Origin: Dicyema japonicum
Lineage: Eukaryota > Animalia > Dicyemida
Assembly: GCA_011109175.1 (NCBI GenBank)
Contig: RDEW01000020.1
Coordinates: forward strand, 242,514-306,513
Length of the DNA stretch: 64,000 nt
Direction of reading: 5' to 3'
In this document: one piece after another, positions 1,549 through 38,691 of the stretch
Numbering within the stretch: position 1 is the first letter of the stretch
Layout of the letters: every line of letters starts with the position of its first letter
Translations under genes and position numbers: made by a program
Notes under the pieces: generated by a model
Told to the model about the DNA's origin: nothing
Database searches by the model: none
What the model saw: only the letters and a program-made list of their open reading frames with translations

Positions 1549-3058
1549 ATGAAAATCTTAAAATGCTATTGCAATCCAAGTCATCTCTGTGATCCTCGGT
1601 CTAACATATCAACTTGCCACTACGGAGGAGATTCATGTAAAATTATATTTTCAGTGCTTCGTGGAGCGCGACCTAAGAAATAGCGCCATTTTTAGGCAAG
1701 GATGCCTCAATAGAATCACCAGCAGACTATTTTGCAATCCAACGAAAACAAACATAAAATGTTGCGGTGACCTCAACTTCTGTAACAGACAGTCGGAAGT
1801 TTACAATCCCGGTTAATCATTTAAATTCTAAAATAGGCGACTCCACTGCAATATCGGCTCAAACACGTGCAATAATCTATTCGATCTTAATTCTGGCAGT
1901 CTTGATTATTGGAGTATCGATCGTTAGATCTTAGCATTTCGAAATTCCGTCGGAAATTGAAATTGATTTTTATTTTCTGTTTCGACGATAAGAGATCCTC
2001 CAGCCATGGAAGACTGAATTGCTCCTCTGACGGCGGGAAGCAGTTTAATAGTCATCTGTCAAGCGGAAACTCAGACTTTGACTTAAAATCGAAAACTTTT
2101 GTCGACCAAACACAGATTTTCAAAAGATCGGTAGAACATAATGTTTACTTAGCACGTGGCAGTTTTGGCGATGTCTGGGCGGCCAAATATGGGATCAAGT
2201 CATTGCCCTGAAACTATTCAAGCCACACCAGCAGGCCTGGTGGTTATGCGAGAAAACAGCCTACACCACGTGGTGGTTGGCACACAGCAACGTCCTCGCC
2301 TATATTGCCGCGGATCTCATCTTCCACCAGTCTGAGCTGTTCTATTTTATTGCCACGGATTATTACCCACGTGGCAACTTGCATGATTCCTCTTAACGAA
2401 TGTAATTGATGTCAACCAAATGCTTGTCCTCATGCGGAGTTTGGCGGCTGGTATTGCTTACTTCATTCTTAGGGCTGAGCTACTTGCACGTGGACTACTC
2501 GATTTTCTTCGGGAAGCCCCCGCTCGCTCACAGGGACCTCAAACCGTCGAATATTTTGATAAAGAAGAACAGCGAATGCTGCATTTCTGACTTTGGCATG
2601 TCTATGGTATGCTTAGAGAATTCCTCCCCGAGCAAATGGGGACCCCCGGTATATGGCGCCCGAAGTACTTGCATCAAACAGCCCATATAATCCAGTGCTT
2701 TCAGATTTGTACAGTTTCGGGCTCGTCATTTGGGCCATTGCACGTGGCAGGTCACTGGGTTGGCTCATTTGTTGTAACCTACTAGATGTCGCCCCCTATC
2801 GTTGTATTCCTTATCAGAATTTAATCACCACCACTCCCACGGTGGAAATATGATGCAAATCGTCGTGGTAGACGGCCATAGACCCTTCATGGAAGACAAA
2901 TGGAATGATGAGCTGGTAATTTGGCTGTTACAGTAATTCGGGGGTAGATTATGAAGAGGATTGCCTATTTGATGGAATTACTATGGGACCCTGACTTCAC
3001 GAACAGACCGGAGATGGATGTAGTCAGCAATTTCCTTAGAAATGTGGATAAGACGTGA
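1549..3058 (+). CDS. TGF-beta/activin/BMP family receptor Ser/Thr kinase (type I-like)
   Basis: Ectodomain LKCYC..C..TC..CF..GC..C..CCGDLNFCN; TM AIIYSILILAVLIIGVS; kinase motifs LARGSFGDVW, ALKLF, HRDLKPSNIL, DFG, YMAPE, DLYSFGLVIW. Introns include 1812-1836 and 2451-2472. TGA at 3056-3058. Homopolymer indels must be corrected to keep frame. Confidence 0.9.
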
Positions 3059-4560: not shown

Positions 4561-4759
4561 NNNNNNNNNNNNNNNNNNNNNNNNNNNNNNNNNNNNNNNN
4601 NNNNNNNNNNNNNNNNNNNNNNNNNNNNNNNNNNNNNNNNNNNNNNNNNNNNNNNNNNNNNNNNNNNNNNNNNNNNNNNNNNNNNNNNNNNNNNNNNNNN
4701 NNNNNNNNNNNNNNNNNNNNNNNNNNNNNNNNNNNNNNNNNNNNNNNNNNNNNNNNNNN
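4561..4759. other. Assembly gap (199 N)
   Basis: Run of n characters. Confidence 1.
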
Positions 4760-32900: not shown

Positions 32901-34403
32901 TTCTGATTTCCTGCAGTGCGGGATTTACTAAAGTTTTTCAGTTATGTTATTCCTGTTATCTATGGGTTACACCGTGTAATGTTAATTTTTTAATTTCTTG
33001 TTTGAGATATTACATAATATTCTTCTCAATTTTGTAGCAAATCTAAGTACGAAATCACCTAAACACTATTATAAACAGACGTGATTTTACTGTCGTCAAG
33101 TACACTTTTAAATTTTCCAGTTTTAACGCTGAATTTTTGCTGTTATTTTTTAACTTTAATCTTATGATTTAATAATAACTCCTGCTTGAACATAATATTT
33201 ACTGCTATGAACTCACGTTCTTATCATCATTCCACACAGTTGCAAGTATAAAGAAAGGTAAAGTGCTAAAACCCTGCTATAAGCATCAATAACCACATAA
33301 TACCATTAGTAATGAAAAATTATGATTTTCAAATCGACTTGAAATTTTGGAATCTTAAATACCTTAAATGAATATTTTGGTGGTATTGAAAATATGTAAA
33401 ATAATCGACAATCACTTCCTCGATAAAGGAGTTATTTATATATAGAACTTTATGCATTAGTTATTAATATTGTTCCTGATATTCAATATTAAATTAATTA
33501 ATTATTCCAAAGACCACGGGTATACCAAACTAACTATTCCTTGATCCTGATGCATTCAGCAGAACCCTCATCCAAGCACAGTGATCCGGGGAGCTGAGGT
33601 AAATTCAAGAACTCGTCGCCAGGAAGAGAAATTGTTTCCCGGTGGAATGAGTAGATGGATCCTTTTGAATCACGGCCAGGCATTGGCGTCTCCTGAGTCA
33701 GGTGGATCCAATGAGGCCGCTAGAGAAATCTTCATCATTGCAACGTTTCCTTGTAATTTATTATTTTTTAAATAAACAACAGTGGCAAACAAATGATACT
33801 CCGAAATATTTCAGTAATTCTCTTCTGATTTTAGTATTGTCTGGAAGCAAAATTTTTGGAGATGTTTCATCTGCTTGATTTTACTTATGAAATGATTCCC
33901 CATATATATCAATTTTAAAAATAGTCGATCAGCACATTGAAAATTCAAGTACAACGTTCGAAACTTATTTTTAGACAAACGATTGTATTATAAATACATT
34001 TTATTGTTAATGATCTAAAATTGAGAACCTTTGATTGAACTCAAAAGTTCACAGCAGGCACTAATATTATTTAAAACAACCAGTGATTGAATTTAAGTAG
34101 CAACTTTCCACTTCTGAGCAGCATTTCTCTTGAAAAGTCAACTTCTGGTTGATAACGACTAGAAGCATGTAGATAGAGGTGACGCATGGAATATCAACTC
34201 ATTTCACTCACATTTGACTTAACAACAACAATTTTATCTTCTCCGTTTCCAGATTATAGGTATATCTTTCCATTTTTATGACCAACTTTTTGTTTTTTGT
34301 AAATTCTAAATCTTTCTTTTTCTACAAATTTATTAACGGAATTCGCATTAATAAATGTTTAAGACTACTGTATTCTTTCTATTTTAGCGCATTCACCGCA
34401 ATT

Positions 34404-37400
34404 TTTTTTGGCCCATATTTTAGGAGCTCAGGGCTTATGTTGTCCGGCCCAGCACTCTTGTTGTTCTTCAGTTTATTTATCGCTAATTCCACCTCTTCCA
34501 CTGTGATTGGGATTTTTAGCGCCTTTGCTTCTCCTTGGAAAGGGGAAAGTCATTATTTTCTTTATTCAACAGTGTTTCGAAGTGTCGTGCAATCAATTCT
34601 GCTTTTTCTTTCGGGTTACCCACGAATTTTCCATCTTTGTCTTTGATGTGAAGGATGTTTTGTCCTTTCTTTGTCCGCAGCAGCCGCAAAGCCGCATACA
34701 TCCTTGAATTGTCTTTTAGGCATTCCACATCTTTTAATAGGGATGTAATAATTTCCCGTGAGTGTTTTCTGTTCATCTTTTTGATTTTCCACTTTAGTTC
34801 CCTTTGTTGGATATTAAGCTCTTTTTTTTACTCTCGTCTGACGTGTTTGCCGCTTTTAGTCGTAGCTCCCTGCAATGCTTTGCCATATTTGGCACGTTCG
34901 GGTGGTGATCCAATTTTAGGGCGTGATGATTTCGGACTCCAAGGCATATTTTGGCCGACTTGGAGATTGCCTGTTTTGTTTGATCCCACAGAGTTCGTAC
35001 TGATGATTCCGGTGCGGTTTTCACCATAAGAGTCTCGATTTGTTCGTGATATTTAGCTCTACAAGTTGGCTCTAACCACAATTTTTCTGTCTGAAAGTAT
35101 ATATTTGGTCTTTGTCTCGCCTTCTTCGCGTTTTCAATGTATTTTTTCCCAGTCAGGTGCTTTTTTACACAAAGTTTTGCAATGACGATCTGTGGTCGCT
35201 GTCGGTTGTTGTTCCCTGGTAGGAACGTGCATCATTTATCAGGTGTTTATCAGACTTTCGGCAAATAATGTAGTCGATTTGATTATATATATTCACGGTC
35301 TCTCCGACAGAGTTTTTTCTTTGTCCGTGCCACGTCGTCTTGTGGCAAGCTGAGTGCGTAAAGGCCGTGTTGCACAGGAAAAGGCTATTTGCCTCGCAGA
35401 AGTTTACCAGAGAGGCTCCAGATGCATTTCTCCTTCCGCGCCCGTGTCTTCCAATAGAGGATTCTTCGGGCCCCATTCGCATTCCGGCCTTTGCATTCAT
35501 ATCTCAGCAACAAAGACAAGAGACGAGGAAGCATTGTTAGAGTATGTGCTTGATAGTTCTGAGTAGAATTCCTCGAGTTCACCGGGGTTCTTGATTACTC
35601 GTCCACAGTGTGGTGCATAGACATTTATGACGGTTAGTAGACTCTTGGACGGGCATAGTTCATTTAGTTTGACCTGTAGGACACATATTCGGTCGTTGAC
35701 TCTCCAATAGCGATGTAATTTTTTGAGGTAATCCACGTGTAGGGCAAATCCCATGCCGTAGTGTTTGCATTCAGTTGGGAAGAGAATCAGTTGGTAGTTG
35801 CTCCATGTCTCATCGCGTCCATTTTCGATTTTCGTCTCTTGTAGGCAGCCAATAGATATTTTGTATTTCTCGAGATCGTCACAAAGTACTTTTCTTGTCC
35901 AATCTTTCGATATTCCACGTACGTTGAACGTCATTAGCCTGAGTTCTCGATTGTATGATGAGTGTTTTTCAAACATTTTTCTTAACCGTTGTACAGAGAA
36001 GAAACGAGGCACGTCACCACCTCACCAAAAAAAATTGCAAAAACCCTAAATGACATCTTTGAAACTAATACTGATCTAGGACTTGGAGATGGATTACTAA
36101 TACCATACAAAAACCGAACAAATCAAAAGGACCGGTAGAAAATCTCCGCCCGATAATACTACTGAATTCGATACGCAAGGTGCTGGCAAACATTGCACTA
36201 AGCCGGATAAAAGGTGTGGCGGACCTATACCTACCAGCAAGTCAAAGTGGGTTCCGAGAAGGGAGGTCTACGGCGGACATTGTATGGAGCCACAGATAGC
36301 GCTGCACAATGCACCAAAAATTCAAGAGCGCAACGACCGTGTTGGGAATAGATCTCTCCAGAGCTTTCGACTCAATAAGCAGACAGAAACTGATTAATGT
36401 GCTTGAGCAAATACTGGATGAATCGTCGGTTAGAATAATCAGAAACTACTATTGGCGAACACAAGATTATCTGTCAAGATAGAAGGAGCAACTTCCCGCA
36501 GTTTCAAAACAACGATTGGGACACCCCAGGGTTTCAAAACGATTGGGACACCCCAGGTGAAATGCTATATAGGAGAAATAGAAGAGACATCTTATGCGGA
36601 TGATGTGGATTTTGTATCACGGGATGTGACCGCACTCCAACAACTGCTAGAAAATGCACCTGCGGAGCTTGAGAAATGGTTTCTCAGCGTAAATGTTAAC
36701 AAAACTGAAATTACGGAAATCAAAAGAGAAGACGATATTACTCATGAAAGATGGAGACGTACTAATAAGCTCGGCTCTCTACTAGGAGACGCTGAAGATG
36801 TACTAAGGAGGAAAACACTGGCAAATGCGGCAATGGCTAAACTGAAGAAAGGATGGCTAAGGGCCAAAGGACTTGGAGTTGACATCAGATGCAGGCTTTA
36901 CAACGCGTTTGTGAAACCGATCCTACTGTATAACGCTGGGACATGGGGAAGTTCCTTCAAAGAACTATCAAAACTGGATTCGTTCCATAGAAGGCAACTA
37001 AGAAGCTTACTCGGAATGGAGTGGCCACGTAGAATATCAACCACTGGTATCTACAACAAGTGTATGTGTTCTTACATCAGCAAGGATGTGATAGATGCCC
37101 GGTGGAGGCTATTTGGGCATGTACTAAGAATGAACCCGGACGCACCCGCTAACAAAGCGATGGAAGATTACTTTGACAGATGCGAAAAACCCTTCCGCGG
37201 ACGACCTAGATCAGAGCTTTTCAAAAAATAATTCTCGCGGCACACTAATCGTAAAAAAAATAATCCACGGCACACATTAAAAATAAAAAATTAAATTTTT
37301 AAGATGTGTAAAAAGTACAAAAATTGGTAATTTAATGCCCAATTTTTTATTAATAGAAAAATGAAATCTTAATTATAATTGTTTTTGCATATATTCTCCG

Positions 37401-38286
37401 ACAAAGATATCTTCATTATTTTTTGTTCATATTTATGACTAAACATAATCCGAGCAATAATACGACAAGCAGGGATTATCAAGTTTTCGCCAATAGTGTG
37501 AGGTTTTAGTTGTTTTGTTATCAATCCTGATATCAGGTATGAACATTTCAATGATTCCTTTGTGTTTACTAAAGTTTCACTGAACATCATTTGACTAGAT
37601 CTACGATTCATAGTAAAAACTAAATAATAGTTGTGTTGTTTTTTCAAATGGATAAAATAATCCACAGATTTTTCGGAATAGTCCGGATGCTTGGAAGTAA
37701 AATGTCTCTTTAGTTTGCTAAAAACCATAGCATCATTTGCAAAGACTCTCATGCAAATTAGACATTGAGGTAGTTTATTTTTGTCTTTGCATATAAATCC
37801 AAATGACAAAAAAGAATCTTTATAAAAACGACGAACTGATCCATAAGCACGTTGATGCGCACGTTATTAAAAAATTAATAAATAATGGTTAACCAATGTA
37901 AATGTCATTAATATATAATAAAAAATGATTATTTTAATTTTAGTAATTATTTTAATTTGTTTATCTTTTTAAATTAATTAGGTCAAAAAATGATATAAAT
38001 TTATTTAAATTTTTATTTGGCAGGCGGCACACTAGAAATTGTCTCGCGGCACACTTAGTGTGCACACCGTTTGACAACCTCTGACCTAGATCGACACTTC
38101 CGACAGCCCTAAACAAAGACTTAAATCGTGTGAGAAAAAATCTAAAGACGGGAGACGACCTGGACGAATTGAGATCACTCGCATTCGACAGAGGAAGATG
38201 GAAAAGACTAACTATAAATATTGTTTCTTTGAGTGTTGCACATGCGTAATCATTATGGCTTTCGTGAAAGTGCTTTAATAATAATA
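34404..38286. mobile_element. Near-full-length RTE-like LINE with inverted 5' half, interrupted by a hAT
   Basis: APE half on minus (36024 to 34398) and RT half on plus (36025-37211, 38092-38286). (TAA)n tail. TSD TCACCGCAATT at 34393-34403 and 38287-38297. Confidence 0.9.
37212..38083 (-). mobile_element. Internally deleted hAT (Buster/Charlie type) with BED finger
   Basis: TIRs CAGAGCTTTTCAAA / CAGAGGTTGTCAAA. Perfect TSD ACCTAGAT (37204-37211, 38084-38091). PQCLIC..ANDAM..SKLKRH..KH and KPHTIGENLI. Confidence 0.92.
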
Positions 38287-38691
38287 TCACCGCAATTCTA
38301 ATTTAGCGCAAATTAACTAGTATAACCGAATAGCAGAAGAGTGACAGTATTCACCGGTTGTAATGTAAAATTCTAACAGAGTTTGTCTTCTCTCTATGTA
38401 AGTTTCACTCATTCTGCACTACCCGTCGACACAGCTCATGTTTTCAGAAAGCCCTCTACCGAAAAACCATTTTCTTGGACATAACTGAGACGCAAGTAAA
38501 GAAATGACCTATTTAACTATAATGAAGATATGAGTACGAATGTTGTTGAAATAATGGCGATAATAAAATGAACGAATACACTCAATCATGATTGCTTGAC
38601 TTTATGTCCATTCCGTCCTAATAAAACTACTTACCATTCATTTACATCAAAACTAACAAAATAAACAATTCACAAACACATATAGTATAAA

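Follow-up and report, generated by a model that had tools for sequence, protein, structure and literature searches.

A 64,000-nt stretch of the Dicyema japonicum genome (GenBank assembly GCA_011109175.1, contig RDEW01000020.1, positions 242,514 to 306,513; hereafter the window, in whose coordinates positions are given) contains a copy of a 3.0-kb RTE-like long interspersed nuclear element (LINE) whose 5' half lies inverted next to its 3' half. A single pair of target-site duplications (TSDs) encloses the whole composite. Each TSD is an exact copy of the 11-mer TCACCGCAATT, which has only these two matches in the window, where shuffles gave an expectation of 0.03 and never reached two. From the left TSD the copy runs in antisense, from a point within the element to where the family has its canonical 5' end (34404-36034), and then in sense (36033-37211 and 38092-38286) to a TAATAATAATA tail that directly abuts the right TSD; the AT skew changes sign at position 36000, from -0.29 to +0.29. 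It is the internal end of the inverted 5' arm that joins the 5' TSD and its 5'-proximal end that joins the sense arm, and the sense 3' arm carries the normal family 3' end beside the 3' TSD, with an identical TTTAATAATAATA end in 10 other copies. An earlier note on this DNA had proposed the order left TSD, antisense to the element 5' end, sense to the (TAA)n tail, right TSD, with about 1.6 kb including the APE half inverted. Both proposals are borne out, the order by the twofold occurrence of the 11-mer and the flip in AT skew, the extent by the antisense sequence, in which the APE motifs can be read. The half-inverted geometry of the insertion is real.

Compared with a natural collinear copy, the antisense arm covers element positions 2-1633 and the sense arm 1642-3047, so that together they make up one element minus only the short stretch CTTAGCGACAC. 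A repeat search of the window found no second direct repeat bracketing either arm, and the 11-bp TSD falls within the 8-12 bp typical of the family. Pattern scans found neither the left junction nor the inversion junction elsewhere in the assembly, and the inverted copy is therefore not a propagated variant. Open reading frames (ORFs) spanning the junctions had no match in the protein collection searched. The target itself contains a 15-nt direct repeat, TTCTAWTTTAGCGCA, at 34377-34391 and 38296-38310 (spacing 25 nt) around the insertion point, and the TSD sits between its two copies.

Table 1. Features of the half-inverted element and its insertion site, in window coordinates.
Feature	Position	Strand	Remarks
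T-run, RTE-type split target signature	34382..34385	+	8-11 nt upstream of TSD start
Left TSD TCACCGCAATT	34393..34403	+	Exact; one of two window copies
Inverted 5' arm	34404..36026	-	From internal A-run (family GGGCC-A7) back to canonical 5' end GG-TGAGGTGG
A8 run at inversion junction	36027..36034		Reverse complement of the variable T-run preceding GG-TGAGG in full-length copies
Sense 3' arm, part 1	36033..37211	+	AATTGC (reverse transcriptase domain) to nested insertion; RVT_1 fragments in three pieces
Diverged block in sense arm	36035..36530	+	4.9-6.3% from family versus about 1% on either side; block-wise counts
Second rearrangement scar	36532..36559	+	About 60 nt of family sequence (reverse transcriptase motif region) replaced by a 27-nt near-copy of adjoining upstream sequence
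Nested 872-bp hAT-like non-autonomous element	37212..38083		CAGAG... terminal inverted repeats; 8-bp TSD ACCTAGAT at 37204-37211 and 38084-38091
Sense 3' arm, part 2	38092..38286	+	ORF end, stop 38247-38249, 26-nt 3' untranslated region, TAATAATAATA tail 38276-38286
Right TSD TCACCGCAATT	38287..38297	+	Exact; one of two window copies

The inverted 5' arm comprises the APE domain, in which the motifs FNVRG, QETK, DMNA and SDH are readable, together with the linker that leads up to the reverse transcriptase (RT) domain. It is 98-99% identical to collinear copies (over 1621-1635 nt) and carries 14 private differences in 1621 positions, counted, like all private differences here, against the per-column majority. 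These differences mark the arm as part of a real individual copy, and on their account we rejected consensus fill-in by the assembler as its source. Because the arm has the 5' end of the element and lacks its 3' end, it cannot be an independent insertion by target-primed reverse transcription.

The family has at least 133 copies at one anchor of an assembly pattern scan, many of them full-length and collinear (3020-3049 nt, 98-99% identical to the inverted arm). One reading frame encodes an APE-type endonuclease at the N-terminus and a reverse transcriptase after it, with no ORF1. In Pfam the RT reached 115.9 bits for RVT_1, and a sister copy reached 26.2 bits for Exo_endo_phos_2, just below the 27.4 cut-off; the match to the L1 endonuclease in PDB was not significant (E 0.4-0.6). 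The stop codon is followed by a 3' untranslated region (UTR) of 26 nt and a (TAA)n tail, and microsatellite-like tails of this sort are listed for RTE elements (PMC6007223, Table 2). A run of at least three T lies within -14 to -8 of the TSD in six of the seven family insertions with a defined TSD, the inverted copy included (window background 0.17; binomial P = 0.002 as computed for at least 5/7, a small sample), and a T-run in this position is the split target signature of RTE-clade elements (PMC6007223). In the inverted copy it occupies -11 to -8 from the left TSD edge, so that the place of the first nick agrees with the way the sense arm is oriented. The RTE identity given in the earlier note is supported by the single-ORF APE/RT architecture, the short 3' UTR and the target signature, which make the element a probable member of that clade; we call it RTE-like. 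The nearest database proteins, at 40-50% identity, come from molluscs, amphioxus, sponge and Phytophthora and bear generic names only, as did everything that word and Atlas searches for a clade name returned, and no 5' ribozyme was matched in Rfam at E up to 1.

Two further observations concern the family as a whole. All copies inspected (L004, L009, L012) are frameshifted, each being split into 3-4 ORFs, which is odd for a family whose members are 98-99% alike. The relatives of the RT piece, at 41-47% identity in Phytophthora spp., molluscs, amphioxus and sponge, are patchily distributed, which may reflect horizontal transfer or contamination.

The collinear copies allow the junctions to be read exactly, and here the earlier description has to be corrected. 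In all 20 collinear copies inspected the breakpoint region reads GGGCC-A7-CTTAGCGACAC-AATTGC-AAAAACCC, and in the inverted copy the antisense arm ends in the A-run and the sense arm begins at AATTGC. Compared with them it lacks 11-12 nt (CTTAGCGACAC, with or without A). The arms otherwise abut; they do not start from one internal point, as had been thought. At the left junction, the TSD ending in ...GCAATT is followed by six more T and then by GGCCC. Full-length copies begin with a variable T-run, GG and TGAGGTGGTGACG (in 10 of 11 the run is of 3-7 T, with interruptions in some, and leads into G or GG and then TGAGG), and their TSDs often end in T. Given this family 5' terminus, the CC and A8 at 36025-36034 are its reverse complement and not a second GGGCC-A7 site, although the last two A of the run may belong to AATTGC (microhomology).

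The same reading resolves a 14-nt sequence that the earlier note had placed in both halves of the element, at 34398-34411 and 36025-36038. The two form an exact inverted pair, but each is composite, and they are not one internal site seen twice: the left copy consists of the TSD end, the internal T-run and GG, whereas the right copy, CCAAAAAAAATTGC, is the 5' terminus of the family (T-run and GG, reverse-complemented) fused to the AATTGC with which the sense arm starts. GPKKIA, named as the internal point, turns out to be an artefact of the junction, where the family encodes GPKKLSDTIAKT. Nor does priming of GCAATT on AAUUGC fit a family-standard RNA, since the inverted arm starts 11-12 nt upstream, in the A-run; such priming would hold only if the source RNA had already lost the 12 nt, and a whole-assembly pattern scan found no collinear copy with that deletion. 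Microhomology is present at both junctions. With a family-standard template it amounts, on the left, to 1-2 nt (T) and, where the two arms meet, to 2 nt (AA); with a template already lacking the 12 nt it would be 6 nt and up to 8 nt, respectively. In addition, the 5' terminus of the element (T-run and GG) is complementary to its own internal CC-A7 at about position 1620, a built-in complementarity of 9 nt.

The sense arm is a mosaic. Its 3' part has 9 private differences in 842 positions, similar to the inverted arm (about 1% each). Within the diverged block at its beginning (Table 1), 11 variants at 36275-36480 are common only to one other copy (the C24 copy, G000 C24:31-34 kb) and a further 13 or so are private, a sharing pattern confirmed when the variant signatures were tested genome-wide. 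The block starts no more than about 20 nt from the inversion junction and ends at the second scar, which we read from an alignment with 15 copies. Block-wise comparison identified the C24 copy as a mosaic of the same two lineages, indicating that the lineages recombine within the family. Hypermutation was rejected as the origin of the block, there being no strand or base bias and 11 variants in common with the C24 copy. The block is possibly a later ectopic conversion whose tract ends where collinearity ends; template switching at insertion is a possible alternative. Further downstream, the hAT-like element entered the sense arm after the retrotransposon had inserted, and a sister copy (L004) has the corresponding site uninterrupted. 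It carries an ORF of 146 amino acids (37369-37809, minus strand) with weak matches to BED and C2H2 zinc fingers (zf-BED 16.9 bits).

The earlier note had also called for a survey of inversions within the family. We located three 23-nt anchors at element positions of about 700, 1540 and 1790, which gave 63, 88 and 133 matches, respectively (100 of the 133 listed), and compared them by eye. For about 66 of the 88 anchors at position 1540, the following anchor kept to the same strand and to the distance expected. An opposite-strand anchor in the order expected of twin priming was found, among the matches listed, in the inverted copy only, giving a frequency of about 1 in 60-130 copies for breakpoints between about 700 and 1790, about a third of the element. 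One other opposite-strand pair, on C356, was set aside: it is arranged tail-to-tail and represents two insertions, without twin-priming geometry. The anchors also turned up same-strand family arrangements that are partially tandem or internally duplicated (G000 C68:167105-170527; C356:573372-573533; C319:437685-439535), and about 14 5' fragments with the position-700 anchor and no downstream anchor, which are unexpected for target-primed insertions.

Here we propose that a single retrotransposition of the element, resolved by twin priming, best explains the locus, with a probability that we put at roughly 0.7. What can be read directly at the locus is its geometry, the presence of just one TSD pair, the absence of 11-12 nt, the canonical 5' end that lies at the internal junction, and the target signature. 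Twin priming is defined by this geometry (PMC2912911), the inversion junctions of twin-primed L1 typically show small deletions and microhomology (PMC5668948, PMC2912911), and the 11-bp TSD fits the association of 5' inversion with TSDs of 10-20 bp (PMC4245944). It is the combination of one TSD pair, two arms that make up one element minus 11-12 nt, a canonical 5' end, microhomologies and like divergence of the arms that favours this explanation over others. As regards mechanism, the endonuclease would have made a bottom-strand nick where TCACCGCAATT has its left edge, with the T-run about 10 nt upstream, and the sense arm would be the product of reverse transcription that began at this nick and followed the RNA from the (UAA)n end as far as AAUUGC. 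While the first cDNA was still unfinished, the top strand may have been cut 11 nt downstream, and the free ...GCAATT-3' end could then have paired, through its terminal T or TT, with the A7 run, which in the same RNA lies 11-12 nt upstream of the point reached by the first cDNA. The second cDNA would have run off the RNA at its 5' end, yielding an antisense arm that ends in CC and an A-run; the normal 5' terminus, T-run included, at the end of the inverted arm is what such a run-off predicts. Finally, the 3' ends of the two cDNAs were presumably joined through A/T microhomology, with loss of the intervening 11-12 nt of RNA. Twin priming, as suggested in the earlier note, is thus retained as the best explanation, without the priming site and the duplicated internal site that the note had attached to it.

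Several observations weigh against this explanation. The perfect 14-nt inverted repeat requires both the hexamer GCAATT/AATTGC and A/T runs of equal length (8 nt), and with a family-standard RNA it is a coincidence at odds that we estimate at roughly 1 in 1000. It may be due to chance; the self-complementary AATT, found at the ends of the first cDNA and of the target overhang, may have set the point where the first cDNA stopped; or the source RNA may already have lacked the 12 nt, in which case AAUUGC would be the priming site and a long A8/T8 microhomology would lie at the inner junction. In the sense arm, the initial 500 bp belong to a different, rare lineage, and the change of lineage lies within about 20 nt of the inversion junction; hence a single step from a single template does not cover the history of the locus. 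Among the matches listed, no second copy of twin-priming type was found in 63-133 copies over the interval of about 700-1790, so that recurrence of inversion within the family is not supported by this interval. Lastly, the flanks are unique, and neither a paralogous nor an allelic empty site is available, the reconstructed empty site being absent from the assembly. In a variant to which we give only a slim chance, twin priming inverts the 5' half, the first cDNA switches between two divergent RNAs, leaving the scar at 36532-36559, and pairing of the U-run and GG with the internal CC-A7 brings the RNA's 5' end to the breakpoint. Were it true, the architecture of the RNA itself would steer where an RTE insertion inverts.

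One alternative is an inversion of DNA after insertion. A normal full-length sense copy would have inserted at TCACCGCAATT, and 1.6 kb of it would later have been flipped by recombination or replication template switching between the 9-14-bp inverted repeat formed by the 5' junction (GCAA-T8-GG) and the internal CC-A-run, possibly during one complex repair event to which the scar at 36532-36559 and the foreign 500-bp block would also be due. Every full-length copy has the T-run and GG at its 5' end and CC-A7 at about 1620-1628, and since this built-in inverted repeat coincides exactly with both breakpoints, a break within it would leave no trace. Such an exchange would be expected to leave the perfect 14-nt repeat as its remnant, and the scar, with its templated 27-nt duplication beside a block of another lineage, resembles template-switching repair. 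Yet repeats of 9-14 bp rarely mediate inversions, and, among the matches listed, none of the other 60-130 copies with the same built-in repeat is inverted there. A later inversion also needs an extra deletion of 11-12 nt, pre-existing or simultaneous, exactly at one breakpoint, whereas twin priming accounts for the deletion and both junctions in one step. We therefore regard a later inversion as unlikely. Less likely again is a chimera of several templates made at insertion, in which the first cDNA passed from a main-type RNA to a divergent one at about 36532-36559 and the second primer was extended on a main-type RNA, so that the diverged block and both scars would date from the insertion itself. 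The precise bounding of the block by two rearrangement junctions and the mosaic nature of the C24 copy would suit it, but arms copied from different RNA molecules would have no reason to abut within 12 nt, no donor lineage with the private variants of the block is present in the assembly, and a later ectopic conversion ending where collinearity ends explains the left boundary equally well.

An assembly artefact, in which the hybrid assembly joined or flipped pieces of a 130-copy repeat that is 99% identical, must be weighed in view of how the genome was built. The published assembly (67.5 Mb in 377 scaffolds) merged Platanus and Falcon builds, with gap closing and haplotype merging, of a genome with 49% repeats and 1.24% heterozygosity (PMC6736024), circumstances that favour such an error, as does the mosaic of lineages in the inverted copy. 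Nonetheless, there is no gap within 29 kb (a run of N occurs only at 4561-4759), assemblers use words far longer than inverted repeats of 10-14 bp, and a mis-join would not yield an exact 11-bp outer duplication or arms abutting within 12 nt; the 14 private differences in the inverted arm, moreover, mean that it was not filled in from other copies. We consider an artefact of this kind quite improbable. Hardly credible at all are two independent insertions, one sense and 5'-truncated and the other antisense, followed by deletion. The difference in lineage between the arms near the junction might suggest them, but an antisense piece that has a 5' end and no 3' end is not a product of target-primed reverse transcription, the single TSD pair surrounds the composite with no second pair around either arm, and the truncation points would need to coincide within 12 nt.

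5' inversions are a hallmark of mammalian L1. The 5'-inverted LINE-1 structure and twin priming go back to Ostertag and Kazazian (2001), whose work PMC2912911 and PMC5668948 describe, and the Dicyema copy shares with that form one TSD pair, a sense 3' arm with a normal tail, an inverted 5' arm that meets the 5' TSD at an internal position, the loss of a few nucleotides where the two arms join, short microhomologies at this and the other junction, and a TSD (11 bp) within the 10-20-bp range. It differs in being a single-ORF, (TAA)n-tailed, RTE-like LINE of a dicyemid, in having an inverted arm that is full length to the 5' terminus with a breakpoint in mid-element, and in belonging to a family whose 5' terminus is by nature complementary, over 9 nt, to the breakpoint site. 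Inversion also appears to be less frequent, at 1 in about 60-130 copies for positions of about 700-1790, as compared with 18% of all new human L1 insertions (PMC5668948).

Among RTE-clade LINEs (Perere-3 of Schistosoma, BovB; PMC8501958, PMC6007223), the element resembles known members in its length of about 3.0 kb, its one ORF with N-terminal APE and RT, its 26-nt 3' UTR, its microsatellite-like tail and the T-run about 10 nt upstream of the TSD start; it differs in that its nearest proteins, at 40-50% identity, are generically named and in that no 5' ribozyme was found in Rfam. Comparative retrotransposition assays of non-L1 LINEs recovered, in chicken cells, one 5'-inverted insert of zebrafish Nimb-2_DR, whose TSD lengths peak at about 12 bp; they recovered no inversions for zebrafish L2; 5' inversions being almost absent from LINEs other than L1, it was concluded that inversion depends on the LINE and the host (PMC4245944). 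The Dicyema copy is like the Nimb-2_DR insert in being a non-L1 LINE with a 5' inversion, and differs in being a fixed genomic copy, not a de novo one, of an RTE-type element, a type outside that assay. Read as twin priming, the inverted copy adds a single new case, from an unusual element and an unusual host, to a known mechanism. As a TSD-bounded, full-length example, it would imply that priming from the second-strand end is open to a very different LINE whose host is very different too, it agrees with the view that inversion is permitted by a TSD of at least 10 nt, and it provides a concrete case bearing on the dependence of inversion on element and host.

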